A model generated the notes under the pieces. That model was not told the DNA's origin. It was given only the letters and a program-made list of their open reading frames with translations, and made no database searches. A program made the translations under genes and the position numbers. A DNA stretch of 64,000 bases. It comes from Trichosphaerium sp. ATCC 40318 (Eukaryota; Protista; Tubulinea). This document shows positions 13,430-46,134 of this stretch, piece by piece. Within the stretch, counting starts at the first letter, position 1; the number at the start of each line of letters is the position of its first letter. The stretch lies in the NCBI GenBank assembly GCA_038496445.1, contig JALMLS010000589.1, positions 1 through 64,000 on the forward strand, in the 5' to 3' direction.

Positions 13430-13801
13430 TTAGTTTGAATCAGAGTCCACCCATTTACCATGCTCAAATACTTGTATACCAGGGATATTAACCTTTTTTT
13501 TCACAAACGACTGGGTAGATATCAATGTATGAATACCTTTCAATTCTTTGATCCCGTCATCACTAACTGCAGTGAAACAAACTCGAAGAGTATGAACACC
13601 AACTAGTGATTTGATCCCTTCATCAGTAACCATTGTTTTAGAAACATCTATCCAGTGTACACCAGCTAATGCCTTTATACCTTCATCAGTAACTCTAGTA
13701 GCTGATAGATCAATCTCATGTACACCAGACAACGCTTTGATACCTTCATCTGTAACTGAAGGACAGTGATTCAATTTGATGACATGTACATTTGCTTTCA
13801 C
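13430..13801 (-). pseudogene. LRR gene fragment of the GVHTIxLxxTxVTDEGIKAL family, lacking an F-box and an in-frame ATG (locus A)
   Basis: About 4.5 LRR units; an in-frame TAA lies just upstream of the GTG; the ORF ends 28 bp from the MITE terminal repeat. Confidence 0.65.
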
Positions 13802-14254
13802 TGCAATTGGTTACAGTATTATGGGTCTTGGAATCCATTTTCGGGTCTGTTTGCGTCGTGAAGGTTTAGTGTTCGCTCAAGAGTTGCAAAATAAGTTCAC
13901 AAGTGAAATAAAACAACTTAAACCATTAAAAATTTACTGGAGTCAATCCCAACTTCACTAAGAGCATTCGCTCGAAGAGTATCTAAAGCCCGTAGTACGA
14001 AAAGAGACTTGAGGGTTTTGTATCACTTGCAATTTTCAAAAATGCCAAATTTATGGCAGAGCTGGGCGTTTGAACATTCTTTGCAGTCCAAAAAAGTCTT
14101 TACCTATTCTTGTTGACAATTGTCACTTACGTCGCCAACCTTCCGTACTCCAAACACATAAAACCTTGTAGAGCGCATTATTAATAGATTTGTACTATAA
14201 ACATAGAACGTGTGCAATTGTTAACAAGTAATTCTTCGGCTTTTATTTATCTCT

Positions 14255-15575
14255 TTACAGTATTGTACAACCACGTTTTCTTTTTCCACCAGATGTTTTT
14301 GTCTTTCCACCTGCTGGTGCATTTTCTGCCTCCTCAGCTGCTTTTGCTCTATATTTATCGATGACACGCACTAATTCATAGTATGTTTCTTGCACTGTGG
14401 AGAGACAGTCAGTAAAACATACGAATTTTAAAAAAAAAGCAGAAAAAAGCACGAACCGTTTATGCATGTTTTTGCTGATGCCTCGAAGAAAGGACAACTC
14501 AATTCATCTTTAGCTAATGCTTCTCCTTCTTCTTTACTTACATCCCTGTTCTCTTCTAAAAAAAAAAGTAAGAAGGAGAAGCAGAGAAGCAAAAAAACTG
14601 TTTCTTCGCTTACCCAAATCGCATTTGTTTCCTACTAAGATACAAGGACAAGAATCTTCTTCCTTAACACGAAGAATTTGCTGATAGAACTACAATAGGT
14701 TTAATATAACAAAAACGTAAATCACGTGTCAAAAAAATAAAACGTTTCACGTGGGAAGGTGAGCGGTAAAAAACTCGTAAAGGTCTTTTTTGTACGTACC
14801 TCACTGATACGTTCGTATGAGCTCTTTGTATCAATAGAATAGACGAGAACAAATCCTTCGCCTTGTCTAGAAAGAATTTTAACAAAACGACCCTAAAAGA
14901 AACCTGTGCATGACAACAGCGTTCAGTTGTGGATTTGTGTTGCGCACGTTTTTTTTGAAAAAAACACAACAAACCAAGTTTGAAGCCCTTTGCTGCTTGC
15001 GTACCTTAGGTATTGATCGCGCATAGCTGCATATTCCTCTTGACCTGCTGTATCCATAATATCCAAAGTAATAGCACGACCATCTACAGTAACTTGCTTT
15101 CTAATTTAAAATTGTTACAACCAGGAGGTTCAAACGAAGAAAAGAAGAGTTTATTGTTCTCTTTACGGTATTGTGTTCGAACAAAAAAGGTTTATGCGTT
15201 ATTATACTACGCTAGTAGCCGCAGGAAGTAATATTTTGCTATCATAACGAACAGAGGCCGTTTTAAAGGGCGAGAAAAAGAAAAGTTTCAAAAAAGTAGT
15301 ACCTGTAGCTGTTTTCAATCGTTGGATCTATCACGTGTTACAAAACGTTTTTATAGTATTTGGGTTTATAAAAATAAGCGTACCATACTCATGTACGAAA
15401 TAATTTTGTGTTAGTCGGATTGTAAGACTACTCTTTCCTACCTTCGACGGAGTTAGTTTTTTCTCTTTTGTAATTTACCAAACAGAAAAAAAACTGTTTT
15501 CTCTTTCTACTCGTTACGTACACCGCCTTCTCCAACTACAACGAGTTTATATATGGATGTGTCTGTGCCTGCCAT
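14255..15575 (-). CDS. Ras family small GTPase
   Basis: [52 protein letters not shown] and EASAK; C-terminal polybasic stretch plus CAAX (KRKRGCTIL). Confidence 0.95.
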
Positions 15576-16003
15576 GTTTTTTAATACGTAGTTCAACTGT
15601 GTTGCTGGTGTGATGCTAAACTTAAAAACTAAAAAAAATTTGTTAGGCTAATATTTCGTTGAATTCTAAAAATATAACGTCATTGGCAGTCATTTACTCG
15701 TTTACTTCAAGGAGAGGTATACTGCGAAATCGTCATACTGACTGCAATAAATATTTTATGATATTCTCAAACCTAATGACACAACGTGCTTTCGGACCGT
15801 CACGTGTGCACAAAGCACTTTTTGAGGACAATAACTGTGTTTTCTAAACAGTTTTTATGGATAGCGGTCTAGCGTCGCATAAGGAATACAATAGCGACTA
15901 CAACAGAATGGTAATTAACCGTTTATTGTTGTATATGTGTCCTACTGGAACGTTGAGTGCCGTGTTCGCTTAGATTCGCGTAGGTACTTGTTTCTTCGTT
16001 TTT

Positions 16004-16419
16004 CTACTTGCTTTTAGACCATAGGCGTATAAACTCCTCTTTGGATAACTCCTTATCCTTACTGGAATCTAATTTAAGCATCATGATCTATTATAATAGC
16101 CGTCAGTTAGTAGTCTGACGAAAACTAAACTTTTTTTTCTGTTTGACAAGCGGTTTCGTTTCTATTCACAATTAAAGATCGGTACTACTCGTACCCTCGC
16201 CATTGTTTTAGCTTGGCTCTGGGTGTATCCAGTTGCTACAAGAAAATCTTGTAGTTCGCCTGAATCAATGGTACCACTATTATCCTATCACGTGATTAAT
16301 AAACAATCTAGTGCGCTTTCCCGTTTTACAAAATGGGTTTTTTTAGTTTTGTTTTCTTGTTGTTGTACCTTATCGAACCTTGCGAATACTTCAGCTATTT
16401 TTTGTTCTGTTACAGACAT
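16004..16419 (-). CDS. Small two-EF-hand calcium-binding protein (3 exons)
   Basis: MSVTEQKIAEVFARFDK|DNSGTIDSGELQDFL...|IMMLKLDSSKDKELSKEEFIRLWSKSK*; the first EF loop is canonical. Confidence 0.8.
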
Positions 16420-17010
16420 TGCGTGTCGATAATGGCTTTCGTCGATTTAACTTAGTTGACCAAAGTTCTTATCTGTTTTTCCAGTACTACGATACCTGGA
16501 GACAAGTGTTGGGCAGCAATTATGTTTGTTATGGTAATTAGGTGGTTTGTTTTTATCTAGTGTTTCGACAAAATTACAACGTTTATTCGTGTCATTGATT
16601 ATTTCATGACGGGCATTTTGCAAGTGTTAATCAATAGTATCCTATTTCAAAGATGTTGGACAGTAGTTGTGATCTGCCGAAGCTTGAAACAAATAACTCC
16701 CTGATCAGTGCATCCAGATGATAAACGCCTTATGCAGCTCTCATTAATTGATGGTTTGCTTACCGTTTAATACTTTCACATTATTTCTTGCAAATTTGGG
16801 ACAGCGGTAGCAGAAAGGACGCGCAACAGACTATGTTGAAGTACGTTTATGGTAAAAAACTTACAATAACTTTCTATCATTCAATGATTTTGCTCAACTT
16901 AAATCACAGCTTTAACCACTGTTACAACGAGGGGTGAATCATATCTTCAATGATAACATTACGATAAATCATACCAATACCCTGTGCTTTTATCTTTCCA
17001 CTAGCAAATA

Positions 17011-17838
17011 ATGGACAATTGCAGCGCAATCTTTGATATTGAAACAAGCACGTGCTTTGAGGAGATGCCTGTGGAAGTCATTGTTCACATTCTACAGTTT
17101 GTTCCAACTGAAGCAATGCACTCAGTTGTACACACGTGTAAATTACTGTCGACTATTGCGACAAAACACTTGGAGTACAGTGACAATGGAAGAGAAATCA
17201 TAGTAAAATCAGGAAGATATCTCAAGACTTTATTCAAAACTGCACCTTATCTCATCAGAAAATGTACTCTATCTATTCCATTCAAACTCAATCAAAAGCA
17301 TTTAAAGTACTTACAAGGAGTGTACAACCTCAACTTACAACATAATATTTCAAAGAGTATTGACTTTACAGACTTTGAAATAATGACAAAGAGTATTAAC
17401 CTCGGATCAATGAGTTCAATCACTGACGAGCATCTTAAACAACTCTCAGGATGTGGTATTAAAAAGATCTGTCTACGTTGTACAAAGGTGACCGATGAAG
17501 GTGTGAGAGCTTTATCTGGTATTCATACAATTGATCTTACTTCCACTTCAGTTACAGATTATGGTATCAAAGCATTAGCTGGTGTTCATACAATCAACCT
17601 TGAAAAGACAAATGTAACTGATGAAGGTTTAAAGTCATTGGCTGGCGTTCATACCATAGATTTATCATACTGTAAACATGTGACAGATGAAGGTATTAAA
17701 GCTTTATCAGGTGTTCATACAATCAGTTTAAAGTACAATTGCAATGTGACAGATGAAGGCGTAATGGCACTTAAAGGTGCCACTTTTGTTGTTTTGACAC
17801 ATTGTCCTCGGGTTAAGCTTGTACATAAAATAATTTGA
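17011..17838 (+). CDS. Intronless F-box/LRR protein (locus B)
   Basis: F-box-like FEEMPVEVIVHILQFV...VCKLL followed by GVHTIxLxx(C)xxVTDEG repeats; 275-aa uninterrupted ORF. Confidence 0.85.
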   Translation: MDNCSAIFDIETSTCFEEMPVEVIVHILQFVPTEAMHSVVHTCKLLSTIATKHLEYSDNGREIIVKSGRYLKTLFKTAPYLIRKCTLSIPFKLNQKHLKYLQGVYNLNLQHNISKSIDFTDFEIMTKSINLGSMSSITDEHLKQLSGCGIKKICLRCTKVTDEGVRALSGIHTIDLTSTSVTDYGIKALAGVHTINLEKTNVTDEGLKSLAGVHTIDLSYCKHVTDEGIKALSGVHTISLKYNCNVTDEGVMALKGATFVVLTHCPRVKLVHKII

Positions 17839-17925
17839 TCTCATTTGGCTGGTTTTAGTTTTGACTAAAGATTGACTAACAGTAGTCGCTGAGGGTCATC
17901 CTATTGAATGCATTTCAGTTACCCC

Positions 17926-18849
17926 TTACCCTGTATACACTTTAGTTCCCTTTAAATCTTTAGCGACTCCTCTAGTAGCTTTACTTTTGAAGGCGTAAAT
18001 ATAGGATGCACCAACAAGTGCTCTTATGCCTTTATCAGTCACTGAAGTGTTATTGAGGTGAATAGTATGAACTCCAGCAAGTGCTTTGACGCCTTTATCT
18101 GTTACTGAAGTGCATGTGAGGCCAATGGTGTGTACTCCCTTCAGTGCTTTAACACCTTCATCAGTTACTGAAGTGTTATTGAGGTGAATGGAATGCACTC
18201 CTACAAGCGCTATAACACCTTCATCTGTCACTGAGGTCTTTGTGAGATGAATGCAATGAACTCCTTTAAGTGCTTTTATACCTTCATCAGTTACTGAAGT
18301 GTGAGCAAGATTAATAGTATGGACTCCCTTGAGTGCTTTAATACCTTCATCAGTTACTGAAGTGCAAATAAGGAAAATTGTATGAACTCCTTTTAGTGCT
18401 TTTATACCTTCGTCAGTAACTAAAGTTTCACTAAGGTTAATAGTATGAACTCCAGCAAGCGCTTTAATGCCATTGTCAGTTACTGAAGTGTTACCAAGGT
18501 CAATGGTATGAACTCCAGCAAGTGCTTTGACGCCTTCGTCAGTCGCTAAAGTATTGGGAAGGTAAATCTTGTGAACACCAGCAAATAGTTTGATAATGTT
18601 ATCGTCGAAACGACGTCCTTTAAACGTGATTTTTGTGTATTTAAGAACACCAGCATATTTCGCAGCTGATTTTGCTTGAGTTGGCGTTTTAATCGTAATA
18701 GCGTGGTATCCAATAACATCATGAACGATAGAAGCAAGCAAACGACACGTTTGACAAGCTGCAAAGCGCGATTTGGTTGTATGACGCAAGATGTGCACTA
18801 CAATCTCTGTAGGAAGCCACGGCGAACTCTGGTTTGACACGGGAAGCAT
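17926..18849 (-). CDS. Intronless F-box/LRR protein (locus C)
   Basis: Likely start ATG at 18849 (MLPVSNQSSPWLPTEIVVHILR...CQTCRLL); nine 21-aa LRRs; C-terminal cap GASYIYAF...KGTKVYTG. Confidence 0.88.
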   Translation of the reverse strand: MLPVSNQSSPWLPTEIVVHILRHTTKSRFAACQTCRLLASIVHDVIGYHAITIKTPTQAKSAAKYAGVLKYTKITFKGRRFDDNIIKLFAGVHKIYLPNTLATDEGVKALAGVHTIDLGNTSVTDNGIKALAGVHTINLSETLVTDEGIKALKGVHTIFLICTSVTDEGIKALKGVHTINLAHTSVTDEGIKALKGVHCIHLTKTSVTDEGVIALVGVHSIHLNNTSVTDEGVKALKGVHTIGLTCTSVTDKGVKALAGVHTIHLNNTSVTDKGIRALVGASYIYAFKSKATRGVAKDLKGTKVYTG

Positions 18850-18938
18850 ATCAGCTGTAGGCAGTAACACTGGTACGAGGAAATTAAAGTCAACCTTGTT
18901 ATTTCCGCTTTTTGTCAAAAAAACCGTTAACTCCAACA

Positions 18939-21900
18939 ATGCGGTTGTTGGTTTATGCTGTTTTCTTTGTTTTATATTATGGGCTTGTATCGTGTGCCTG
19001 TTATGATTTAGGATACGAGCAAGTAAGGTTTTAATCAATGATACTCTCTTAAAGCGTCTCTAGATGAACGGACCTACCTCCAGAGATGATTTCCAAGCGT
19101 GGATAACAAGTTTAGTGCTAGTCTTACGTAATACTTGACTGTTAACTCTTTATCTTTTGATCTAGAGCTTAGAGACTACAGAGAAAAGGAAATTATCGCT
19201 ATTGGATTCAACGATACGTTTTACGACATACCACAGATTCAATGGACACAAAAAGCCTTCATACAACCCCAAATGATGTCCCATGAACGTTATTTTTACG
19301 ACACAAGTACGTATAGTATACAACCTAGTTTTAGCCTGAAAAGTTTTCCTTTTGTAGCTACACGTGCTTATACTGTTGACAAATACTTGGACGACTTGAA
19401 TGATCGGTATGGTGGTATAGACGCTGTTCTAATATGGCCTACTTATCCCAGTACAATACTATTATGTCCTGTAGCATTGGGTGACATGTTTTTGCCTTAG
19501 ATATTGGTACTGATGATCGAAACCAATACGACTTGATTCGCTCAATGCCTGGTTACCCTGATAAACTACGCGATGCTGTAAATCAGTTTCATAGTCATGG
19601 CGTACGTGTTTTATTCCCATACAATCCATGGGATAAAGGAACACGTGAAGAAGGAGTACCAGATTGGGTAGCAACTGCTCAAGTGTTAAAAGAAATAAAT
19701 GCGGATGGATTCAATGGTGACACTATGGGTGACATTCCAGAAGACTTTTTTCAACAAGGCATAAAGCACGTGACTTCTAAAAATAGTTGCTACTAAATTC
19801 TAATAACTTTAAAGAGAGGGACATCCTATTGTATTAGAAGCAGAAGACCAAGGCAAGCCATCAATTAACCTTATTTGGCAGACATACGGATGGGGATACT
19901 GGTAAGTGCTTTTTGTTCTTCCTTTCTTAGTTTGTTCTGACTTTTTTTTGGCTTCTAGGAGTTATCCTACAATACCTTGTGTATCTACTTTGAAGTGGAT
20001 TGCTCGTAAGCATGTTACGAATGTATGCAATAGATGGAGTACAGATCATACCGATGATCTACAGTTTGCGTTCTTTAACGGCGTCGGTTATGAAAGTTGG
20101 GAAAATGTTTGGGGTATTTGGAACCAAATGGTACCTAGGGATGCTCAAGCACTTAAACGTATTGCTTCAATTCTTCGGTTCTTTGGAACAGATTTTACAA
20201 CACAGAAATGGACACCTCATACACCAGAAGTCATACAAGGTTCGAGGATTTAAATCATTTACAACACAGTTCTTTTCTTTCTCTTAACTAAAGTTGCTAG
20301 ATATGATTTTCGCTTCAAAATTTCAAACTTCCAATGCATCTATTTGGACAATAGTTAACAGATCTTCGAAAAATATGACAGGCGATCAATTGAGAATAAA
20401 AAGAGAAGGAAATACTCGCTATTTCGATGTGTACCATGGTGTAGAACTACAACCAAAACAAGACGGAGAAAATTACATTCTCAGCTTTGATATTGAAGAC
20501 AATGGCTTTGGTGCCGTCTATGCTACATCAACGCCTATAAGTAATACGTTCACTTCTTTTTTGAGCACAATGAAAGACTTGACAAGACATGCGCTTGGCT
20601 ACTATTCCAAAGAATGGACTGTTTTAGAACAAAAAATGATTCCTATTCTTCCTACTCCAGGAGTGCGTTTACTACACTACTGGCGTTACTCTAATATCTA
20701 TTGTTAGGTTTTAAGCGAGCCTACAGGAATGATTAAAATACCTAGCGGACAATTTAACTTTACAGTCAAAGGGATAGAAATTGAAGGTGCTTTCAACTTC
20801 TTTTCAGCACATTTTTAACACCTTTTATTTCATAGGGTATTATCCTAAAGGTGTTGATTTTCAGTATCCGTGGGAATCTTATCCTAGAAGACAACATTCT
20901 AATACTATGACTGTCAAGGAGTTCTTCATTGATAAGTATCCTGTCACAAACAAGAATTTTGAAACTTTCTTGAAGCAAACCAAGTATCAACCGGAAGATA
21001 AAAAAAACTATCTTCGTGATTGGAATGAAAACAACGGAAGTTTTCCTTTAGGTTGGGATAATAAACCAGTAACATGGATTTCATTAGAAGAAGCAAATCT
21101 TTACTGTATAAGTAGGACACCAAAGGCGAGGTACCCAAAAGAATTTTGTTTACTGTTTCCAAGTGCTTGTCGTTTTCGTTTCAAAATCTCTTCGTTTCTT
21201 CTATAATAACTTGTCTCTATAGATTACCTAATGAATGGGAATGGCAATATGCAGCTCAAGGATTAGACGGAAGGATATACCCATGGGGGAACACGTGGAC
21301 CCCAAGTATGTTGTTTTTTATTTTAGTTAAGCAGTGATTTTATGTACTTAACGCCTTAACAGGTAACGTTCCTGTACCCGATAAAGGTGGTAAAATGCGT
21401 GGTCCTGATGACGTAGATGCTCATATAGAAGGTGCATCACCATTTGGTGTAATGGATATGACAGGAAACGTATATCATTGGTATGTTGGTAAATGTCATT
21501 ATTTCTAATCGTGAACAAGGACAAATAAATTTTGTGATGAGCACACGTGCGCAGCAGTAATTCGCGGAGGAAACTATTATACACCATTGGGTATGTTTAA
21601 AACTATTTATTCCGCACTATTTTATTGCTCTCTCTTTGTACGATTCTGAGAACTAGTACTTTCTTCTTATGTCAGGTGAAACTTTACTTCGTGTATCAGT
21701 CAAATTACGCTGGCTTCAAAAAAACCCCAACTGTACCCTCTTTCATTTCTGAGCCCAAAGTCAACGCTTTCAAACAACCATCTGAATTTTCCTGAAGCCA
21801 TAAATGCATTGAATTTACTGCCTTCAACAGCAAAAACAACCGTGTTTGAAATGTAGCTACAAACAAGTGGTGTTTTGTTTCAAAGTAGTGGATATTCATC

Positions 21901-22040
21901 TTTCTAATTTAAAGCTAGGTTCAAGCTGGTACCAACCGCAGAGTTATAGTTTATTGGAGCACACTAAATATTTACTAATGTCACCGAGTCTGGATAGATC
22001 TGGCGGAATAGGGTTTAGATGTGTTGTTGATAGTAACTAA
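18939..22040 (+). CDS. Secreted protein with an N-terminal glycosidase-like region and a C-terminal FGE-sulfatase (SUMF1/EgtB/PvdO) domain
   Basis: Signal peptide MRLLVYAVFFVLYYGLVSCA; YGGIDAVLIWPTYP, ADGFNGDT, GYESWENVWG; FGE motifs FFIDKYPVTN, RLPNEWEWQYAAQG, YPWGN, SPFGVMDMTGNV and IGFRC. Confidence 0.85.
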
Positions 22041-22115
22041 TAAACAAAATCATGTCAAACATTTTTCAATTGAAGTTATCCTCCTTTTCTATTTCTAGGA
22101 GGTATTACTGATGCA

Positions 22116-22465
22116 TTACTGTGATAAAACTGCTTTGAAACTTGAGGACAATGTGTAAAACCGATGTGATAAATCTATGGTATGAACGCCAGCCAATGAC
22201 TTTAAACCTTCATCAGTTACATTTGTCTTTTCAAGGTTGATTGTATGAACACCAGCCAATGCTTTGATACCATAATCTGTAACTGAAGTGGAAGTAAGAT
22301 CAATTGTATGAATACCAGATAAAGCTCTCACCTTCATCGCTCACCTTTGTACAACGCAGACAGATCTTTTTAATACCACATCCTGAGAGTTGTTTAAGAT
22401 GATCGTCAGTGACTGAACTCATTGATCCGAGGTTAATACTCTTTGTCATTATTTCAAAATCTGTC
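22116..22465 (-). pseudogene. Inverted partial duplicate of F-box/LRR locus B (locus D)
   Basis: The reverse complement is near-identical to about 17368-17667, with a 2-bp deletion (gtgtgaga>gtgaga), then jumps to B's terminal ACACATTGTCCTC, skipping about two repeats. No F-box. Confidence 0.9.
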
Positions 22466-22606
22466 AAAAGACGCTAAGTACTGTTTGGTAGTCAATGCCT
22501 TAAAACGTCGATAGGAGGCTTAAATTAAACGGAAAAAAATACTGATGACATCACCAGCCAAAAGCGAAATAATGGCCATCAGCTCTGGTACATTATAAAA
22601 CCTAAG

Positions 22607-22968
22607 ATGGTATATACAAATCATCGATGGATCAGTACTGAGGTAGCATATTGGCACCTACGACTACTGCTATTTTTATAAATTCTTCGTTAATAGTGTT
22701 GTAGGTGGATGAGTACAGCAACGCAGTGAGATTCTTGTCAAACTTGTTCATGCGACACGAACCAATACTAAGCGATATAAACTACACAGTTCGTATTGTT
22801 GTAAGAAACGCAAAAGCCAATCCAAGGTTGTTCCGCTTAAGGTTATTGAAGCAAGAAGGTGATGTAGAACGCTGTTATTTATTATTTCAAACGTTTCTAG
22901 ATGATACAGAACGTGGTGGACATCCCATCAACAAATTTCCTTTGCCAACATTGTCTAAAGTCGGTTAG
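22607..22968 (+). CDS. Small hypothetical protein (2 exons)
   Basis: MVYTNHRWISTE|VDEYSNAVRFL... joined in phase 0 across a GT-AG intron at about 22643-22704. Confidence 0.4.
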
Positions 22969-23095
22969 TTGATAGAAAAGAGGAGACAAAGTGCAATAAC
23001 TCTAACTAGTGTTTATTAAATACACAAACTTGCCCCATTTACTGTAACTTTACATTAGTAGTTAAAAACTATGTATTTTTGCCCCGATAAGTGCT

Positions 23096-24241
23096 TTAAT
23101 ACCTTCTGAGGTGAATCTTATGAACTCCAACAAGTGCTTTAATACCTTCATCTGTTACTGAAGTATTTTCGAGGTTAATCCTATGAACTCCAGCGAGTGC
23201 TCTAATGCCTTTGTCAGTCACTGAAGTGTTATTGAGGTTAATAGTATGAACTCCAGCAAGTGCTTTAATACCTTCATCAGTCACTGAAGTATTTTCGAGG
23301 TTAATCCTATGAACTCCAGCGAGTGCTCTAGCGCCTTCATCAGTTATTAAAGTGTTATCAAGGTCAATTATATGAACTCCAGCAAGTGCTTTAATGCCTT
23401 CATCAGTTACTGAAGTGTTACCAAGGTCAATAGTATGAACTCCACCAAGTGCTTTAACGCCTTTGTCAGTTACTGAAGTGTGACAAAGGCCAATAGTATG
23501 AACTCCACCAAGTGCTTTAATACCTTCATCAGTTGCTGAAGTGCCATTGAGGCGAATGGTATGAACTCCAGCGAGTGCTTTAACGCCTTTATCAGTTACT
23601 GAAGTGTTATTGAGGTGAATGGTATGAACTCCAGCGAGTGCTTTAATGCCTTCATTAGTTACTGAAGTGTTAGCAACGTGAATAGTATGAACACCAACAA
23701 GTGCTTTAATACCTTCATCAGTTACTGAAGTGTTACAAAGGTCAATAGTATGGACACCAGCAAGTGCTTTAACGCTTTCGTCAGTTGCTGAAGTGCGACA
23801 AAGGTCAATAGTATGGACACCCTTCAGTGCTATAACGCCTTTGTCAGTTACTGAAGTGTTATAGAGGGATATAGTATGAACTCCAGCAAGTGCTTTAACG
23901 CCTTCGTCAGTTACTGAAGTGTTATTGAGGGAAATAGTACGAACTCCAGCAAATGCTTTGACAGTGTTGTCATAAAAATAAGATACTGAGATTTTTGTGT
24001 ATTTAAGAATCCCAGGATGTTTTACAGCTGATTTTGCTTGAGTTGGCGTTTTAATCGTAATAGCGTGGTATCCAATAACATCGTGAATAATAGAAGCAAG
24101 CAAATGACATGTCTGACAAGCTGCAAATCGCGATTTGGTCGTTTGACGTAAGATATGCGCTAATATCTCTGTCGGTAGCTGTAACAAACTTGTGCTGGTG
24201 GTACTGTCAATTCTACAACCCTTTGAGGTAGAAAGCATCAT
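23096..24241 (-). CDS. Intronless F-box/LRR protein (locus E), 13 full repeats, C-terminal cap lost by a small deletion
   Basis: LLQLPTEILAHILRQTTKSRFAACQTCHLL then 63-nt tandem LRR units. The last unit reads CACCTCA|GAAGGTATTAAAGCA (about 20 nt missing), leaving the cap homologue (GCACTTATCGGGGCAAAA...) out of frame at about 23040-23095. Confidence 0.9.
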   Translation of the reverse strand: MMLSTSKGCRIDSTTSTSLLQLPTEILAHILRQTTKSRFAACQTCHLLASIIHDVIGYHAITIKTPTQAKSAVKHPGILKYTKISVSYFYDNTVKAFAGVRTISLNNTSVTDEGVKALAGVHTISLYNTSVTDKGVIALKGVHTIDLCRTSATDESVKALAGVHTIDLCNTSVTDEGIKALVGVHTIHVANTSVTNEGIKALAGVHTIHLNNTSVTDKGVKALAGVHTIRLNGTSATDEGIKALGGVHTIGLCHTSVTDKGVKALGGVHTIDLGNTSVTDEGIKALAGVHIIDLDNTLITDEGARALAGVHRINLENTSVTDEGIKALAGVHTINLNNTSVTDKGIRALAGVHRINLENTSVTDEGIKALVGVHKIHLRRY

Positions 24242-24319
24242 ATCGTCTATATTTGTCTAATTAATAACAGCTAGCCTTGATAGAGGAACCCACAACGTTG
24301 AAAGTAAGTATAACAGCTG

Positions 24320-24346
24320 TTTTATTACGAATTTAAGTCACGTGAT
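24320..24346 (-). promoter_or_regulatory. Upstream element shared with F-box/LRR locus G (contains CACGTG)
   Basis: ATCACGTGACTTAAATTC(G/T)TAATAAAA occurs upstream of locus E here and at 44773-44799 upstream of locus G, 26/27 identical. Confidence 0.5.
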
Positions 24347-24474
24347 ACTGCGGTGTGCTAAAATGTAGAAAAAAAGTGGAAAAAAAGTGATATGAACTGT
24401 TCGCTAGTGGTTGAAAGTTAACGGCTCGGCTCTAAATGACTTTTCAAACAAAAACTCTATTTAACTGGCTAACC

Positions 24475-31459: not shown

Positions 31460-31919
31460 ATGGAGTCCATAAAGTTTGCTTGGAAAGTTGAATACAAAGG
31501 CTTGGCTAACGGCAAATGTATTGAATCAAAGACGTTTTCTTTATCGCATGATTTTGATGGGTACAAAGGAACTGCCTGATTTTCCTAATATAAATTTAAG
31601 GTTTTTGAGAATGTACCCATCAGGAGATGGCGATAAAAGCATAGGACATGTCTCTATGTTTTTACAAATTCGGTATTGTTGTACACGTGATGTATTGAGG
31701 CCTAACATACGCGTTGAATACACACTGAAGGCAGTACCTTGTGGTGATGCAAAACCACGAGAAAGGTCAGCGACCCGTGTGTTTGAAAAAGATGAGGGTT
31801 TTGGCTGGGATAAATTCTTGGCTACAAGCGAGCTAAATGATAACTACCTTGATAATAACAACGAAATGACATGGCACCTTGAAATTACTAGTATACAAAA
31901 GATCTACAATTCAAACTAA
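31460..31919 (+). CDS. Stand-alone MATH/TRAF domain protein
   Basis: MESIKFAWKVE...|FLRMYPSGD...GHVSMFLQ...GFGWDKFLATSEL...YLDNNNEMTWHLEI; one short intron at about 31561-31600. Confidence 0.8.
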
Positions 31920-35071: not shown

Positions 35072-35525
35072 GTGAAGAGGCTTTGTTTCTTCTTTTTTTT
35101 TCTGGCAATATTTTTTTTGTTGTTAACTTGATTTATCTAGCGTTTAAATAAAATCCCAACAAAGATATGATGAATGTACAATGTGACTTTTATTCTATTG
35201 TATAACTTAAAAATATGTAAATACCATTTGATCGAACAATAAGACAAATAAAGAAAAACCAAAATTTTGTGAAATTTCATTAAACCCAAAAATCAAACGT
35301 GCACTCTCGGTAATCAAAAAGTGTTTTACACACTTTAGCCTATATAAAAAATTGTGTAGAACATTGTTCAAACAAGTAAGTAGTAATCTATGCAAAAGCA
35401 GTCATAAGTAATAATGCCTCTCGAAAAAACTGACAGTTGACGTTCCCTTCACTGAAAATAAAAAGATGTTACTTCTACTGGTTGTAAACTTAAATACGAT
35501 ATCATAATCACAACATCAACATACA

Positions 35526-36648: not shown

Positions 36649-37129
36649 TGTTTCTTTAATAAAGTTTACATAGCAGTCTTCTTATGCTTTGTGAAAGCAT
36701 TTCTATCCGTTTATATTTGGAGCGTTAAACTTACCGCATGTGTGCAAAGATGTGGTGTGAGTGGACATCAATAGGTATACCCTATGTCGTTTTTCTAGCT
36801 TCAACAAAGACTTGGTAACATGTTCCAACCTAAATCAAAACATAACATATTAACCTTAATTTGCACCCTAGTGTTTTAAGTCTAGTGATAGCTTTAATAT
36901 TGGTGTACCACAGAAAAGGATAAATCTATTTATTATTGGTACGAATACAAGTCATGTGGATTCAATGATTATTCATAAATGTTGATGCTGATACCCAACT
37001 ATCTTTTTTTTTTGAGTAGTCTGGAATTGAACCATTTACAATATGGAGTTGGCTTTACTTACTTCGACTGGCTATTTTCATACCAGGACTTGTATTCTCC
37101 TCCTCTTGTTTACCATTGATGTAATTACA

Positions 37130-37838
37130 TTATTCATATAATTGGCCATTTTCACGCCACCTCGATTCTCCTTTCCACTTACCATTGACATAATGACTCA
37201 GTCTTTCTAATTTGCCACTTTTATACCACTTCTTGCTTTCTCCTTCTTTTTCACCATTGACGTAAGTACACAGTGTCCTCAATTGGCCATTTTGATACCA
37301 CCTCCTGCATTCTCCTTCTTGTATATAATTGATGTAATCACACTGTTCAAATAGTTGACCATTTTCATACCACCTCTTATATTCTCCTTCTTGTTTATCA
37401 TTGATGTAATTACGCTGTTCATGAAGTTGACCATTTTCATACCATCTCTTATATTCTCCTTCCCACTTACCATTGACGTAATTACACTGCCTATGTAATT
37501 GACCACTTTCATACCAGACCTTGTATTCTCCTTCTTGTGTACCATGTTCCCAGTATTGTTGCATTACAATATGGTTGTTCGCTATTTGTTGCCATTTACC
37601 ATGCTTTTTCAAGTCGCCATCAAACCTTGATGTCAATGCTGTCTGTTTTGAAAGAAGAGGCCAAAGCAAATACAATGACATGTCTAAATCAATAATATCG
37701 AGTTGAATCTCGACTGGAAGGCGTAAAAGATGGCAATCATCTGATTGTACACTAAATACCTACGTGTTTGCTGTTACATGCTTCAAATTGTGATTAAATT
37801 GCTTGTACCTTGTTATTTATACTAAGAATCGCTTGCAT
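37130..37838 (-). CDS. F-box-like + MORN-variant (YwqK-like) repeat protein with a degenerate 3' end
   Basis: MQAILSINNK|VFSVQSDDCHLLRLPVEIQLDIIDLD then 24-aa repeats CNYINGKxEGEYKRWYENGQLxEQ. After the TAA at 37130 another repeat continues with a frameshift to about 37065. Confidence 0.8.
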
Positions 37839-38136
37839 TTCATTAACTAGTGGCTACTGAACAATGTGTTTGAACGGATAAGGTAAATATGAAAGTCACG
37901 TGCGTTTGAGCTTTTCGCAAAATGGAGAGCCACGGTTGACTAAAAAAAGAGCTATTTCCCTCAAAAATGACAGAAAAAAGCTACTGGAAGGAACCAGTGG
38001 TCACGGACCTTTCCTCATTGCTTAACCATACGAGGTTCCTTAATAAATGCCAAATTATTTGTATTGTAGTCAGTTAAAAACAGCAGCATAGGTCTTTAGC
38101 CGTGTAACATAAATCACAAGCACAACAAAGAAGTAG

Positions 38137-39015
38137 ATGAATAGTGCTTTGAAATCAGGTTATTGCCACTTATTAAACCTTCCCCTTGAGCTACAGCATT
38201 ATATTATCAATTTAGACTATACAGTTTACATAAAGTGGCCTCTCTTATCCAAAATTACAGCAACAACAACAAGGTTTGATAATGAGCTTAAGAAACACGG
38301 GAAATGGATAAAAACAAAAGTAACAGCTTCTTCTGGCTTGGGAAAGCCCAAGCTATGTATTTTGGTAAACACGTGCTTGTTTTAAAGTGAAACGACAAAA
38401 TCTCTTAAGTTATTTGTTTAGGCAGAGGATACTTTAAGGCATGGTGTATTTCATGGGGTATACAAGCGATGGGATAAACAAGGAAACTTGCTTCAGCAGT
38501 GTTATTATGTAGATGGTATAGTTGAAGGAGAATTTCAGACATGGTATGTCAATGGCAAGTTGAAAAGCAAGCGTCATTACATCAATGGTAAAAAAGAAGG
38601 AGAATGTAAAGCTTGGTATTTTAATGGCCAACTGCATCAACAATATCATTGCATAAACGGTTTAGTTGAAGGAGATTACAAGACTTGGTACTACAATGGA
38701 CAAATCGGCAGTCAATGTAATTATGTCAATGGTAAAAAAGAAGGAGAGTACAAGGCATGGTATGACAATGGTATGTTAAGAATAAAGTTCAATGTTGTTA
38801 ATGGTAAACGCCATGGTGAATACAAAGAATGGTATAGAACCGGTCAACTCCATTGTCAAACTATGATAAGATATGGTAGGCGATATGGACGGTACAAAGA
38901 GTGGTCTATCAATGGTCAGCTACGTACAAATGTTGTGTATGGTGACTCATGGCAATATTGGATTATTGTGCTTGTAGTATTAGTGTTCATTGCCTATTAT
39001 TTATGGGCTTTCTGA
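38137..39015 (+). CDS. F-box-like + MORN-variant repeat protein with a C-terminal transmembrane anchor
   Basis: CHLLNLPLELQHYIINLD...RFDNELKKHGKW (paralogous to the previous gene); one intron at about 38320-38421; about 6 MORN-variant units; tail WIIVLVVLVFIAYYLWAF. Confidence 0.82.
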
Positions 39016-39375
39016 ACACTATCCTGATGAATACTCACAGCAGGATCACTGATGGCGGAGGACAAGCTTACCCTTGATCTTGGAGAAGGGCATGTTGATG
39101 CTACTTTAACACAACTGGAAATGGTACTAGAGTCGCAACAATAGTGCCTTGTGCACTTTATGTAACTGTGCTCTTTTTTTTAAAGTTATATAGCCAGCTA
39201 ACATATATGATCTACCAACCCTCTTGGTTTGACATAAAGCTTAGTTTGTACAAGCAAAGACATTAGCGAAAATGGTATTTGTAATAGTCCATTAACCAAT
39301 TCGCTCGAATAACAACACAGGGTATTCTTTGACTACAGGTTTTTATCTATTTTGTTTACTTTACAAGTTGAGTGT

Positions 39376-39936
<561 letters not shown>

Positions 39937-41929
39937 TCATAAAATGAAACAACCGAAAGGTAGGAGTCTTTGATACGCATATATAAATACATGTACTTGT
40001 GCATACTTTCTAACTTCATTGTAAATGACACAAAAAAGAAACGCTAAATTTAGTGTTATGGAGTTGATTATTGTTTTGACTTAGGTTGTATGACGAACTG
40101 AAATCTTGAATCTGCATACATGTACTGACGCTCTTAAGAGCGTTTGTGTTTTCTTTCTTGCTTTTTTAACCTTGTCAGTGTTTCATGTTTTCACGAAAAA
40201 AATCCCCACTCACTTGTTTACGTGCTCCAATACTGGCTGTTTCGGTACTCCAACAAACGAGATAAGCTAATAAGCTTGATTACGCCCTGCATGTCATAAT
40301 TATAAATTAATTCAAGGTAAGAGATGTTGAACAAAGAACAAGAAAAAAAAGAGAAAAAGGTCTTGATTGTAGTACAACAAGAATCTATATCAACATCAGC
40401 TTGACGCTCGCAATGTAAGACCAACTTGTCAAAACTACATAGAAAACATCATTAAATGCGGAAAGTGTGATGTAAGATAGTGAAGGTGAGGTACCCTTTG
40501 AAGGATGTGGTGCCTTTAAAGACATTATAAGAATAAAGATGGAGTTGTTGCAAATGTATTCCACAATGCCACTATCGGGATAGCAGCATAAAAAACAAAC
40601 CACCATCTATTGTACCCTTTCTACAGACCACAAGTTCTTGCTACTTTTGGTTCCATTCATAGCACATAAACATCATGTTGTCAATTGCTTCAGAGCGTAT
40701 TTTTGACGTTTGGAGGAGCCAGAGTCATCACGTGTTAGAAGAGCCTTAATTGTCTCAAAAGCATTGCTTCCTTTACTTTGTTTGTTTTACTTTTCATCAA
40801 GATTAGTCCTTCATTTGGTGACGAGTTCAGTATGGTCAAGTCAACAAAAACTAATTTGTAACCACTGAAGCTCTCAAGAATTTCGTTGGAGAATCTCTAG
40901 TCAAGTTTTTTCAAAAGTCTCAGTATGAATTGAAGCTAAAGACATTGTCGCGGCCTACATTGCACTGAACGACCCAATCTAAGGCTAGCATACATTGGTG
41001 CTGACCAAAGGGTTTACACAGCAGTTGCACCTGTCGCTCTCAATGTGGGAAGGCAAGGACGCTATCTGCTAGATAGGTTAACTGTTTGGCATTGTAGTCC
41101 TTATAGATACGATAGTTCGTAATCACAAGAGGGTGTGACCCTCCGCCCTTGGAAGCATTGTCAAGTCTGGAAGACTGACCAAGTTCGTTTATATAATTAG
41201 TTGTTATCATTTTTCGCATGGTTCACGTTGGCCGCAAGCAGTTTTTTGAGTGTATTAATTATGATCGCTGTTTTTAAGCAAAGCCTATCCGATGTACACC
41301 GCGATTGGAACACGGGTGAGTGTTTGATGGTGACTAACCAGGGTCCCAGCCTGGAGCGTTGACTTTGTTAATAATAATTGTAATTTTTAACAACTTGGCT
41401 GCCGTCGACTATATAATAAAAATAATGGTTGTTATTGCCATTTGATGACAAAAAGGTGGATAATGTCAAGTCACTTAAAGTTAACGCTTCATTTTTTTTG
41501 TTTACTTTTCTCAAAAAGGAAACCCAGCAACAGTCTTTAATTGTACTACGGTCTCAATACAACATATTTTTTTTCTTTTCTGTTGTACTTCCAAGAACGG
41601 AGTATTAGCATCAATTCACTTTGCCTTTTTAAAATATTTGTAAGACTTGCTCTTTGTATTGATATGTAGAGTCATTTACATCATTAGCTCAAACCAGAAT
41701 GTCTGTAAAGCGAAACTCATAATATACTTGCCGGTGAATTTCGCGAAATGTAGAGCAAACCAAAGCGGAGTTTCGAAAACTATTGTCTGACAAAAGCCTG
41801 CTTTCTTGGTACAGTTGTAATGGTTTGTGGAGTGCATCTGTGGTTATCTTATCACCACATTTGATAAAAAATGTGCATTGCGTTGTCAAGATAAAACGAT
41901 TATACGATGGATCAAAAATCCCAAAAAAA

Positions 41930-43195
41930 ATGGATATAAGATCATTTCTCCTTTGCTTGTTACTTTCATCCTTCATCTTTGTATCAAAGACACAACATAC
42001 TCTAGTAGCTGTAGGATTTCAGATTGGTTCTCAAAGGTCTTTCCAACGCTTTGAGTTGGAGTCTGGAACGCTTATAGGCGATTGTAAGTTCTTAAACATT
42101 TGTCCTTCTCTTTTAAAGTTTATTCTCATTCCTTTGTAGCTTGCGTGTTTCCGACCCAGTTTATTGCTTCAATGAGTGCGTATTTCGATACAAATAAAGT
42201 AGTTTAAGGTTTTCGGCAATGTTAGTTCAAAACGAAACGTCTTCGATTGTTTTTAGAACAAGAGTTTGAGTTTAGTCTCATCTACGACATTCTCTTTGTT
42301 TATTTCGTTTAGCGTTTCTACAGAATGGGAATCTTGCTGTATCTCTTGAGGGTGAAGGTGCCATCAGAGAGGGAATGATACAGACGTTTGGACCAGAAGG
42401 TTGCGTTCCCGTACGTCTTAAACTAATTTTTTTTTTGTTTCATCACATGAAAAACCAATAAACGTTTCGTAACACGTGATTATTTCTAGATTGAAACTTG
42501 CGAGGAAATGGACACGGCTAGGACGAATACAAACATGAATGTTGATCCTGTAACGCGTACCTTGTATGGTACTTTGGGAAACAGTGTTACAGTCAATTCT
42601 TTTACGTCACCTTGCGAACCCACTCCTGTATGTTCGGATATAACAACAGGACCTCCCTCAGTTGCAACAAGTATGATTCTTTGTACAACTGGATTTCAAT
42701 TCTCAACTAACCGTTTCTCTTCCAGCTATTGTCATTGGGATGACAGTATATATGGCGGACCCATTCGATAATGAGATTGTTAAAATGAGCCTTCCAGCAA
42801 GCCCACCTGCTATGTGCTCAATGATAGGAGAACCAATTATTTCGCCATGTACCGAAATAAAAGGTACAACCTAAAACACTGAAATATTGTGGTAACAAAA
42901 AGCAGGGTTTGCAGTATTTGATAGTACACGTATACTGGTTGTTTGTGGTGAAGACGAAATGGGAGACTCTCACTTATACAATATAAATGATGACTCTTTC
43001 ATAGAAACCGGATTCCCTCAGATACCTAACTCTGACAGAATTGTTGGATTAGCTGTAGGTGGAGCTATATGTCAAACGTACTCTCATTGACTTTCTTCTT
43101 TATTATTCATTCTTACTTGTTTTTATTCTAGAAGCCAAATTGATAGTGCTCAGCGTATAGCTCTACTTTCAGGATCAAGTGGTTACAGAAAATAG
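41930..43195 (+). CDS. Secreted Cys-containing hypothetical protein (possible beta-propeller), multi-exon
   Basis: Signal peptide MDIRSFLLCLLLSSFIFVSKT; successive short GT-AG-bounded exons; last exon SQIDSAQRIALLSGSSGYRK*. Confidence 0.6.
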
Positions 43196-43596
43196 TATCT
43201 CAAAATCGTACTTTATGCTCTCCAATATGATAACATCTTGAATAAACTATTCACATTTAAAGTTGTAAGTTGGTTTAAACTGTTGACTCGTAGGCCCTTT
43301 GTATGAGGACTATACTACCATAATCAGACTTTACACGCACGAACACGTGCTATGGATTTGTAAGATACTGACTCTATGTGTTACAAGAGTCAACGTAAAT
43401 GACTAGCAACTATTAAAGTACATGATTTGAACACAAACGATGGAGCACTGGTACACCGTTGTAGTTTTTACTGGTTTTTTATTTTACTGCCTGCTTGAAA
43501 AAGTTGAATACTCGCAAAGCTTGGTAGTGTTAACTGTAGTTAAATCCACTATAAGTTACATACCGCAGATCAATATGTGGTAATAGACGTAGGGTG

Positions 43597-44463
43597 TCAC
43601 AAAATATAGCTTGAGCTAGGGTGAAAACGAACATAGCATGCAGCAAGTGCTTCAATATCCTTTTCAGTTATTGATGTGTTACCAAGGTGAATAGTATGAA
43701 CTCCCTTCAGTGCTTTGACACCTTCATCTGTTATATTTCGACATCCATTGAGGCGTATATCATATACACCCTTCAGTGCCTTTATACCTTCATCAGTTAC
43801 TGAAGTGCCCCTGAGGTTAATAGTGTGAACTCCAGCAAGTGATTTAATACCTTCATCAGTTACTAGAGTTCTATACAGGCTAATGGTATGTACTCCCGCA
43901 AGCGCTTTGACACCTTCATCAGTTATGTTTTTACATCCATTGAGGCGTATTGAATACACGCCCTTCAGTGCGTTAATGCCTTCATCAGTAACTGAAGTGT
44001 TATGAAGGGAAATAGTATGAACTCCCTTCAGTGCTTTAATACCTTCATCTGTAACTGAAGTGTAACCAAGGTAAATAGTATGAACTCCACCAAGTGCTGT
44101 GACGCCTTTATCAGTTACTGAAGTACCAATGAAATGTATAGAATGAACTCCAGCAAGTGCTTTGACACCTTCATCTGTCACATTTTTGCATCTATAAAGG
44201 ACAATAGTATGAACTCCAGCAAATTGTTTAATATCATCTCCAGAATTATATCCTACAATGATCTTTGTGTATCTCAGAATACCAGGATGTTTTACAGCTG
44301 ATTTTGCTTGAGTTGGCGTTCTAATCATAATAGCGCGGTATCCAATAACATCGTGAATGATAGAAGCAAGCAAATGACAGGTTTGACACGCTGCAAATCG
44401 TGATTTGGTCGTTTGACGTAAGATGTGTGCTAATATCTCTGTAGGTAGCTGTAACAAACTCAT
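43597..44463 (-). CDS. Intronless F-box/LRR protein (locus F)
   Basis: MSLLQLPTEILAHILRQTTKSRFAACQTCHLL, near-identical to the N-terminus of E; nine LRRs of mixed 21- and 22-aa types. Confidence 0.9.
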   Translation of the reverse strand: MSLLQLPTEILAHILRQTTKSRFAACQTCHLLASIIHDVIGYRAIMIRTPTQAKSAVKHPGILRYTKIIVGYNSGDDIKQFAGVHTIVLYRCKNVTDEGVKALAGVHSIHFIGTSVTDKGVTALGGVHTIYLGYTSVTDEGIKALKGVHTISLHNTSVTDEGINALKGVYSIRLNGCKNITDEGVKALAGVHTISLYRTLVTDEGIKSLAGVHTINLRGTSVTDEGIKALKGVYDIRLNGCRNITDEGVKALKGVHTIHLGNTSITEKDIEALAACYVRFHPSSSYIL

Positions 44464-45261
44464 TTGCAGAATTTTCGAACGTGATGGCCCTATCTGAAGG
44501 TAAAAATATACCTTTCTTGCAATACAGATACGTGTAGTAGCTTTGAACGCGAGTTAACTGTGATAAAGCAAAGTATCAGACTTGACTTAAGAGATGTGTT
44601 AAGTAGGTAGATTAACGAAAACGAATGACGGAAGTTCACGCCTTTGTTTTATTAGCTCCGAAAAGGGCGCCAAAACATGATTTCTTCAAAATACACCGAT
44701 GTAGTCTACCTCTAAGTTTACTGTAGCAGTTAATTACGCGTGTTTCGTATTTTCGAAGGTGGACACGTGATGATCACGTGACTTAAATTCTTAATAAAAA
44801 AGCAACTTTAAACGTTGCCTTCTAAATAAACACATCTAGATGTGATGGTGTGTTCTTACGTTGATTTGGTCCGTTTAGGCCACTGGACGTGTACTGGTGT
44901 GAACAAAAAGTGCATCAAATCACAGACCATTCTTAATTACGTTGGTACTACATGTTCATTGGAACATGTGACCCCTGAAATTTGCCAACAAATATCATGA
45001 TGAGCTACACACCCACAGAGCTCAGGTACATACTCTAACAATCGGTTCAATAACAGTACCAACTGGGGAAGCATATTATACTGTGACCCAATTGTAGAAT
45101 CATGTGCGGGAGGTTAATATTTTGAGAACTGGTACTCAGCGCAAATGGGCGTGTTGTTTTACAACAAGAATAAAAATTGGGTTTTTAAAGAGCGTGGCAT
45201 CAGTTTTTTTTAAAGTCAATAAAAACGTTGAAAAGTGCATACATAAAATATTTCGAAAATT

Positions 45262-46134
45262 ATGCTTTCTGCCTCACCATGTTGTAAAATTGACAATACC
45301 GCCAGTACAAGTTTGTTACACCTCCCTACAGAGATTTAGCACACATCTTACGTCAAACGACCAAATCACGATTTGCAGCGTGTCAGACATGTCATTTGCT
45401 TGCTTCTATCGTTCACGATGTTATTGGATACCACGCTATTATGATTAGAACGCCAACTCAAGCAAAATCAGCTGTAAAACATCCTGGGATTCTTAAATAC
45501 ACAGAAATCACAGGAGCACGCTATTTTGATGACAACGTTATCAAACAATTTGCTGGAGTTCGTACCATTTGCCTCAATTGCAATTTATTAACAGATGAAG
45601 GTGTCAAAGCGCTGAAGGGAGTTCATTCTATTTTCCTCAGTGGCTCTTCAGTTACAGACGAAGGCGTCAAAGCACTTGCTGGAGTTCATATTATTAATCT
45701 TAGTTGCACTTCAGTAACTGACAACGGTGTTAAAGCACTTGCTGGAGTACACTATTTATCTCAGTAACACTTCGGTGACTGACAAAGGAATTGAAGCACT
45801 CGCTGGAGTTCATACTATTCACCTCTATCATACTTTAGTTACAGATGAAGGTATAAAAGCACTTGCTGGAGTTCATACTATTAATCTTGATGGCACTTCA
45901 GTAACTGATAAAGGAGTTAAAGCACTCGCTGGAGTTCATAAGATTAACCTCAATAACACTTCAGTAACTGATGAAGGTATTAAAGCACTCAAGGGTGTTC
46001 ATACTATTCACCTCAATAACACTTCAGTAACTGATGAAGGTATTAAAGCACTTGTTGGGGCAAAATATATTTTTGCGTATGGTAGTAATGTAAAAGGGGT
46101 CGTAGTGTTAAAAGGGACAAAGGTTAATTTTTAA
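45262..46134 (+). pseudogene. Frameshifted F-box/LRR gene (locus G), divergent from F
   Basis: The start MLSASPCCKIDNTASTSLLHLPTEI aligns with E. A 1-bp deletion at about 45335 (gagatttagc vs gagatattagc) and a second shift at about 45750 split the ORF in three. The C-terminal cap is intact. Confidence 0.82.

Follow-up and report, generated by a model that had tools for sequence, protein, structure and literature searches.

Why should a marine amoeba carry a series of F-box/leucine-rich repeat (LRR) loci among its ordinary genes, with repeats that agree along most of their length and differ at a few exposed codons? How free-living amoebae recognize giant viruses and intracellular bacteria is, to our knowledge, poorly understood. 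The question arises from a window of 64,000 nucleotides of Trichosphaerium sp. ATCC 40318 (contig JALMLS010000589.1), in which an earlier note, made from the sequence alone, had seen a repertoire of receptors that tag foreign proteins for ubiquitination.

Seven loci and four reading frames

Seven LRR loci, A to G, are located in both orientations as the earlier note described, and all are built from one type of 21/22-residue repeat. That note took them for an F-box/LRR family. Full frames of this architecture are confined to B, C, E and F; the remaining three, A, D and G, are debris, which had been missed. B (17,011–17,838, + strand) is intact, with 275 residues, an F-box-like segment and five LRRs, and is an older, divergent paralogue. 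C (17,926–18,849, − strand) is also intact and encodes 307 residues with an F-box, nine LRRs and a C-terminal cap. F (43,597–44,463, − strand), intact with 288 residues, has an F-box and eight LRRs, three of them of a 22-residue Cys type, and lies head-to-head with G. E (23,096–24,241, − strand) encodes 381 residues with an F-box and 13 LRRs; its repeat 14 lacks about 20 nt, which puts the frame out and deprives the protein of its C-terminal cap.

Among the debris, A (13,430–13,801, − strand) is an LRR-only remnant of three clear repeats and some degenerate ones, with neither an F-box nor an in-frame ATG. D (22,167–22,467, − strand) is a gene fragment rather than a gene, a 301-nt inverted copy of positions 17,365–17,667 of B with 97% identity and a 2-nt deletion. 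G (45,262–46,134, + strand), with an F-box and eight LRRs, is a transcribed pseudogene with two frameshifts, a 1-nt deletion near 45,336 followed by a stop at 45,337–45,339 and a 2-nt deletion near 45,752; it entered the analyses as separate pieces only. The near-identical N-terminus reported for C, E, F and G is borne out (77–94% amino acid and 86–96% nucleotide identity over 53 codons), and their repeat numbers of 9, 13, 8 and 8 agree with the claimed range of about 8–13.

RNA contigs of paralogues are numerous (153 in one run), the RNA runs all coming from one sample. Among the named loci, RNA was compared at F and G; exact transcripts were found for the pseudogene G only, and no exact long contig was seen for F. 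The G contigs match the genome with 0 differences and 0 gaps and bear both frameshifts, which rules out an assembly error behind them. The description of the family as intronless fits B, C, E and F, whose frames are uninterrupted at the DNA level. In transcripts of G, by contrast, a 43-nt GT..AG intron (45,558–45,600, + strand) is spliced out of the first LRR unit. This splicing, seen in two RNA runs, takes out the variable codons of that unit and shifts the frame. The neighbouring genes had been called intron-rich, and the one examined has four GT..AG introns of 54–79 nt that are spliced in RNA. No tRNA genes were found.

An FBXL-type architecture

With the Pfam F-box profile PF00646, E (22.8) and F (21.8) score above the cut-off, C falls just short of it (19.7 against 20.5) and B is a weak case (an F-box-like match of 19.0 bits, under the cut-off); the Pfam search gave no F-box in A and D. 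The canonical F-box tryptophan and one leucine are replaced in these proteins, and a sequence search found no solved F-box relative of the F-box region. An AlphaFold2 model of E (pLDDT 90.5) has as its best structural match the FBXL2-SKP1 complex (6o60, Z 27.5), in an alignment that spans both F-box and LRR and includes the N-terminal helices; FBXL17-SKP1 (6wcq/6w66) also matches. Together, the Pfam matches in C, E and F and the FBXL2-SKP1 fold match uphold the proposed F-box plus LRR architecture. The three x positions of the I-x-L-x-x-T motif had been assigned to the concave beta-face; in the model, the first x is predicted to lie on the beta-strand in most repeats, but the other two in the loop that follows. 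No NACHT/NB-ARC or effector domain was found in any locus by the Pfam search.

Relatives and giant viruses

The closest matches overall are transcripts of Trichosphaerium ATCC 40318, in keeping with the amoebal host assumed earlier, and the best MMETSP0405 matches are 47–52% identical. A single Trichosphaerium transcript falls into one clade with C, E, F and G (support 100/96). As had been anticipated, there are no one-to-one orthologues with the nearest sampled relative, four loci standing against one transcript. Comparable proteins are present in Stygamoeba and Clydonella.

The closest named matches outside amoebae belong to the Nucleocytoviricota, in which the same F-box/LRR architecture is common, a point that the earlier note had missed. 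One alternative is that the loci are domesticated or decaying giant-virus genes, with a diversity owed mainly to many separate transfers, or that they act not as receptors but against viral F-box effectors, as decoys or competitors. The nearest Atlas clusters are likewise Nucleocytoviricota, and one giant-virus contig encodes the same architecture with 42% identity. The best viral fold matches are F-box/LRR proteins of Tupanvirus, Hyperionvirus, Catovirus and Pithovirus (28–35% identity), and the GVHTIxL repeat type also occurs in viruses. Giant-virus-like F-box genes in Trichosphaerium are already known: the accessible part of PMC10521059 lists about 1,568 virus-matching models, with F-box and MORN the commonest, treats these genes as lateral transfers and ties them to the cell cycle. 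Its Table S3 has at least about 180 rows each naming proteins prefixed Harvfovirus20_, Harvfovirus8_ and Harvfovirus3 (identified by prefix only), and the virus taxa matched here are among the best-hit donors in the part of that study available. Phage records gave no match, nor did a viral scan with a single protein (query P0027).

However, C, E, F and G are, to judge from their sequences (dS 0.11–0.34, shared flanks), recent in-genome duplicates nested among Trichosphaerium paralogues, and the proteins of Stygamoeba and Clydonella add to this. It follows that the diversity now seen was generated in the host, whatever the deep origin. In the unrooted tree, whose deep branches lack support, the viral sequence and most of the gene-dense metagenomic ones group apart, likewise without support. 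As an account of these loci, a diversity owed mainly to viral transfer, or a decoy role, is improbable.

Exchange of repeat units

The repeat units are recombinant mosaics. Among scaffold site pairs, 128 of 171 fail the four-gamete test. The left half of a unit shows no correlation with the right half (r 0.03), and by scaffold distance, units of one gene are about as far apart as units of different genes. The state of a silent leucine base is associated with that of codon 7 (p 0.004) and with that of codon 9 (p 0.0004), and certain unit pairs differ at only 2 of 51 scaffold bases but at 7 of 9 x bases. The repeat reshuffling that had been suggested is thus seen between paralogues of one genome.

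Whole genes have been copied as well. An element of 31 nt upstream of E (24,315–24,345, − strand), containing TCACGTGA, is 94% identical to its counterpart upstream of G (44,773–44,803, + strand), and the two genes also share a 3' motif. E and G are thereby shown to have arisen by DNA-level duplication including the flank, and retroposition is disfavoured because both elements are common to the pair.

Probable selection on three codons

Selection was analysed on 34 repeat units of 63 nt each, with codons 7, 9 and 10 as the variable codons. The variation is concentrated at these I-x-L-x-x-T positions, where the earlier note had placed it. The scaffold is under purifying selection, with an omega of 0.19 across the 34 units, as is suggested also for the F-box and linker of C, E, F and G (dN 0.03–0.11 against dS 0.11–0.34). 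At the three x codons, omega is 2.45, and about 2–3.5 over analyses. Comparison of site models M2a and M1a gives a 2dL of 36 or 23.8, depending on the tree, and M2a picks exactly codons 7, 9 and 10 with a posterior of 1.0. Null simulations including recombination, per-codon rate variation, or an older or faster patch attained 23.8 in 0 of 72 and 1 of 108 cases, i.e., 1 of 180. The dN/dS check proposed for the variable codons thus gives an omega above 1 in the site model, but the pairwise test is borderline, with a ratio of 1.85 and a p of 0.04–0.13 when the choice of the best three of five face codons is allowed for. Because of this, we regard selection for amino acid replacement at the three exposed codons of each unit as likely rather than certain. 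The sample is also small, with 34 units and three codons. Of the outcomes that the earlier note had named as refuting, none was clearly obtained.

The same data may be read as nearly neutral turnover of a redundant giant-virus-type family, in which the fold alone is conserved and the exposed codons are unconstrained, the apparent omega above 1 being made by gene conversion and uneven silent rates. The debris at three of the seven loci and the truncation of E agree with this, as do a pairwise ratio of only 1.10 across all five face codons and of 1.28 with a more generous dS, obtained by dropping the least variable silent codons. Some silent sites are indeed nearly invariant (TCA in 28 of 28), and dN at the x positions roughly matches dS in the relatives and the viral gene, for which there are few units, near saturation. 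Against it, besides the simulations, stands the pattern of change within codons: at third bases, variability is no higher in the x codons than in the scaffold, but at the first two bases it is about double. Positions with a consensus A are changed in 94 of 204 cases in x codons versus 19 of 176 silent sites, and the per-site p is 0.016–0.053. Neutral turnover is accordingly a serious contender, if on balance an unlikely one.

The consensus of the variable patch, AAC-CTY-AAT-AAC, raises the further idea of a targeted, adenine-specific mutator of the kind found in diversity-generating retroelements (DGRs), or of somatic cassette assembly like that of lamprey variable lymphocyte receptors (VLRs), since the variable codons are AAC, AAT and AAC, in which bases 1 and 2 vary and base 3 is mostly fixed. 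DGR-type adenine mutagenesis is rejected: silent adenines of the same units change less often than the remaining silent sites (17/124 versus 59/199, p 0.001). The third-base variation equals that of the scaffold, and the linkage of the variable codons to a neighbouring silent base marks them as inherited and not as fresh mutations. The preference at the first x for Asn, Asp, His, Ser, Cys and Tyr also recurs in relatives and the viral gene. Within the window, no template repeat was seen and no reverse-transcriptase-like ORF of at least 120 residues, nor was any use of D as a cassette donor. The RNA contigs of G are identical to the genome, although contigs drop rare variants. Such a mechanism is very improbable here. 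The apparent selection for change at the three surface positions, taken together with repeat swapping, points to an arms race with some partner.

A possible recognition repertoire and its parallels

The reading that we favour, with a probability of about 0.6, is a birth-and-death family of SCF adaptors that evolves like the fungal HNWD repeats. The loci would be members of a large family of FBXL-type substrate adaptors that has expanded within the lineage of a Trichosphaerium-like amoeba. Their F-box would dock on Skp1-Cul1, and the LRR solenoid would bind a protein target for ubiquitination. Genes would be born by DNA-level duplication (E and G, the D fragment) and die frequently (A, D, G, the tail of E). 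The 63-nt units, whose swapping within and between genes is shown statistically, may be exchanged by ectopic recombination or gene conversion, which would keep the scaffold uniform and re-assort the short surface patches, a mode best described as germline concerted evolution with probable diversifying selection. The selective pressure would probably come from some biological partner that itself changes fast; proteins of viruses or symbionts are the foremost candidates, and self/non-self or selfish-element proteins are alternatives. A more tentative reading is that hundreds of such adaptors form a defence repertoire of the amoeba, in which exchange and three-codon selection yield specificities against viruses and symbionts, and that viruses turn the same scaffold on the host.

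In lampreys, somatic assembly joins silent cassettes into a single VLR locus, and the products are surface or secreted proteins. The lamprey analogy drawn earlier holds for the copying of short LRR pieces and for the constant scaffold with a variable face, but the proteins here begin with an F-box and the closest mechanistic parallel is the germline concerted evolution of HNWD. As in FBXL2 and FBXL17, N-terminal F-box helices are followed by an LRR solenoid; unlike in these SCF receptors, the repeats are very short (21 residues) and highly self-similar, and the genes are multi-copy and short-lived. The F-box genes of nematodes have C-terminal domains other than LRRs. They too expand in a lineage-specific manner, with an F-box under purifying selection and a positively selected substrate-binding part (Thomas 2006, cited in PMC8120010), whereas diversification here proceeds through repeat exchange.

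The HNWD genes of Podospora (het-d, het-e) and other fungal NLRs whose repeats are highly conserved share with the present loci unit exchange within and between genes, variable repeat number and pseudogenes, and in HNWD, as is likely here, a few codons per repeat are under positive selection on the binding surface. Their role in non-self recognition has been demonstrated (PMC1805685, PMC4986451). They differ in having WD, ANK or TPR repeats rather than LRRs, and NACHT and death domains rather than an F-box. Arrays reshuffled by recombination are also found in the brown algal ROCO LRRs, in which positive selection acts on four sites of the concave face in each repeat and an immune role has been proposed (PMC11378527), and in Tetrahymena LRR genes with 90-bp exons (PMC6564038). 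However, one repeat equals one exon in these genes, in contrast to the continuous coding arrays and F-box seen here.

Giant-virus F-box/LRR proteins have the same architecture and repeat type, and the NEX1a F-box-LRR expansion of the amoeba-associated Neochlamydia resembles the present family in its birth and death (PMC4209131), but the genes of viruses and chlamydiae are presumed to encode effectors directed against the host. Each ingredient has a precedent in other systems, and only the discovery of a target would make the family more than moderately surprising. An F-box family that combines HNWD-style exchange with probable selection on the binding face nevertheless supplies concrete candidates for recognition, with three codons that can be mutated. 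The accessible part of PMC10521059 contains no analysis of repeat exchange or selection, and the approximately 1,500 “virus-derived” Trichosphaerium genes that it reports may largely be expansions of a few repeat families within the host rather than separate transfers.

Organization and decay of the F-box/LRR loci

A single type of leucine-rich repeat (LRR), with the consensus AGVHTIxLxxTSVTDEGIKAL, occurs in a six-frame motif scan at seven loci from 13430 to 46134, with both strands represented. Ordinary eukaryotic genes lie around these loci, namely a haem peroxidase, a Ras-like gene, an FGE-sulfatase-like gene, a Rho GTPase, a MATH-domain gene and ubiquitin. The MATH-domain exon (31476-31919, + strand) represents another type of ubiquitin-ligase adaptor in the same region.

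Of the seven LRR loci listed in the earlier note, full reading frames are present only in B (17011-17838, +; five clear repeats), C (17926-18849, −; nine), E (23096-24241, −; 13) and F (43597-44463, −; eight). Gene death is frequent in this family. Locus A (13430-13801, −; three repeats) lacks an F-box and an in-frame ATG, D (22167-22467, −; two repeats) is a fragment, and G (45262-46134, +; eight repeats) carries two frameshifts. E has lost the cap present in C and G through a deletion of about 20 nt in its last repeat that shifted the frame. Just downstream of A, at 13160-13390, are degenerate short GGCAATGC/GCATTGCC repeats, direct and inverted, possibly a small mobile-element remnant.

The arrays of C, E, F and G have a 63-nt period (Tandem Repeats Finder) and, as had been noticed, differ in repeat number while sharing a near-identical N-terminus (77-94% amino acid identity over F-box and linker). 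The N-terminus of B, an old paralogue, is about 26% identical to that of E.

Pfam F-box scores for C, E and F are at or near the cut-off. In the AF2 model of E (pLDDT 90.5), an LRR solenoid comes after three helices at the N-terminus, and the model's top solved match with two aligners is FBXL2 bound to SKP1 (Z 27.5, rmsd 3.8, model residues 16-360); FBXL17-SKP1 likewise ranks high. From this likeness we infer Skp1 binding and SCF adaptor activity. In most repeats of the model, T-I-x (codons 5-7 of the 21-codon unit) forms a strand, with the other two variable positions (codons 9 and 10) in the loop that follows. By standard LRR geometry, all three x codons are predicted to lie on the concave side and its edge.

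Duplication and repeat exchange

The genes arose by duplication at the DNA level, since E and G have an upstream element and a 3' motif in common. D, which repeats 301 nt from the middle of B in inverted orientation (97% identity, 2 nt deleted), is a case of a short gene piece copied to a new site.

The arrays are mosaics, which bears out the suspected reshuffling of repeats. Of 171 informative site pairs in the scaffold (the unit outside its variable codons), 128 fail the four-gamete test. The left and right halves of a unit show no correlation, and a unit resembles those of other genes about as closely as those of its own gene. Units of E, F and G have no collinear correspondence, though N-terminal dS is only 0.11-0.27. 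Across genes, the variable codons next to the central Leu are linked to its silent third base (p 0.004 and 0.0004), and by about 12 nt away linkage is no higher than background. Surface variants are thus passed on in short blocks, which are re-assorted.

The variable patch (consensus AAC-CTY-AAT-AAC, variation at bases 1-2) resembles the target of a diversity-generating retroelement (DGR). However, the third bases of the variable codons are as variable as those of the scaffold, adenines show the least variation of all silent sites, which argues against adenine mutagenesis, and the variants show linkage with neighboring silent bases.

Selection at the variable codons

Positive selection at the three x codons of each repeat is probable, at roughly three chances in four, while the F-box and scaffold are under purifying selection. 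Among 34 in-register units from C, E, F and G, omega was 0.19 for the scaffold and 2.45 for the x codons. In a site mixture that did not pre-specify the codons of interest (M2a versus M1a), 2dL was 36 on the IQ-TREE tree and 23.8 on the FastTree tree, and the omega > 1 class consisted of codons 7, 9 and 10 (posterior 1.0). Because recombination can mimic such a signal, nulls with neutral x codons were simulated: none of 72 with free recombination reached 23.8, and one of 108 did so with per-codon rate variation or an older patch.

A tree-free pairwise ratio at the x codons was 1.85, and unchanged without pseudogene G (1.90). The site model gave dN/dS above 1 at these codons, but the pairwise test allowing for codon choice was weaker (p 0.04-0.13), and the ratio was 1.28 with the least variable silent codons dropped and 1.10 across all five face codons. 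In Trichosphaerium transcripts and a viral gene, the x codons are again variable, with dN close to dS in few, near-saturated units, so a variable face characterizes this type of repeat in general.

Transcription

RNA contigs came from three runs of one sample, and are indeed RNA, since the four GT..AG introns of the gene adjacent to F are skipped. Over 45255-45557 and 45666-45885 they agree with G at every base and without gaps, so both frameshifts are real. In two runs, a 43-nt GT..AG intron (45558-45600) is spliced from the first repeat of G, leading to a stop. Hence G is a pseudogene that is transcribed, and it is not strictly intronless as the family had been described. The 43-nt GTTCGT...GAAG segment spliced from G recurs in the first repeat of E (23902-23944, −), where splicing would shift the frame. 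No exact long contig was listed for F in the three runs, although contigs show presence, not absence. Paralogue contigs matching at 90% or more are many (153 in one run), which shows a family that is both large and transcribed.

Relatives in amoebae and giant viruses

The top sequence matches come from one transcriptome (JGI 3300016894), whose match co-clusters at 90% with an MMETSP0405 protein (taxon 498012, Trichosphaerium sp. ATCC 40318); best identities to Trichosphaerium matches are 47-52%, a level that does not establish the same strain. Similar proteins are present in Stygamoeba and Clydonella. A tree of the N-terminal part joins C, E, F and G to a single Trichosphaerium transcript (support 100/96) inside a wider Trichosphaerium set; the deep branches of the tree lack support. 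The window's GC content (34-39%) and intron sizes agree with the published Trichosphaerium genome, which has 37.7% GC and a mean intron of 75 nt (PMC10521059).

Outside amoebae, the named proteins that come closest are F-box/LRRs of giant viruses, the nearest Atlas clusters are Nucleocytoviricota, and the nearest viral proteins by fold are from Tupanvirus, Hyperionvirus, Catovirus and Pithovirus; one giant-virus contig has an F-box/LRR match at 42%. PMC10521059 describes about 1,568 Trichosphaerium models with viral matches, F-box and MORN being commonest, to these same virus taxa. In the portion of Table S3 consulted, the best matches of hundreds of "viral LGT" models fall on just a few viral proteins, a pattern suggestive of family expansion within the host and not of many transfers. 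A gene-dense contig of an NCBI assembly that looks giant-virus-like carries, at 1488-16214, two tandem LRR genes of the same type with FNIP and ankyrin genes.

Comparison with recognition systems

The earlier note's evolutionary reading largely survives these tests. The family is neither an NLR nor a DGR system, nor a demonstrated VLR, but in mode of evolution it is like the Podospora HNWD non-self recognition genes (PMC1805685) and brown algal ROCO LRRs (PMC11378527), which are driven by the same evolutionary recipe, and like nematode F-box families, in which the F-box is under purifying and the binding part under positive selection (PMC8120010). An immune role for the candidate repertoire is plausible; that its targets are foreign is speculative. 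The combination of F-box/LRR proteins, HNWD-style repeat evolution, an amoeba and a giant-virus-shared scaffold was not found described in the literature searched. Every single ingredient has precedent.

Other features of the window

Two head-to-head MORN_2 genes with a 72-nt repeat (37060-37750, −, and 38140-39015, +) share an F-box-like N-terminus (62% identical), for which Pfam made no F-box call. There seems to be a frameshift near the 3' end of the first gene; the second apparently contains an intron and terminates in a hydrophobic tail. Their best sequence matches are MMETSP-type transcripts, one named Trichosphaerium, and their nearest Atlas clusters are Nucleocytoviricota. Adjoining the pair is a ubiquitin gene (39376-39912, −) with one canonical ubiquitin followed in tandem by a diverged ubiquitin-like domain. 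Across the whole window, the palindrome CACGTG (60 observed, 9.6 expected) and TCACGTGA (7 observed, 0.7 expected) are over-represented, in both intergenic DNA and introns.
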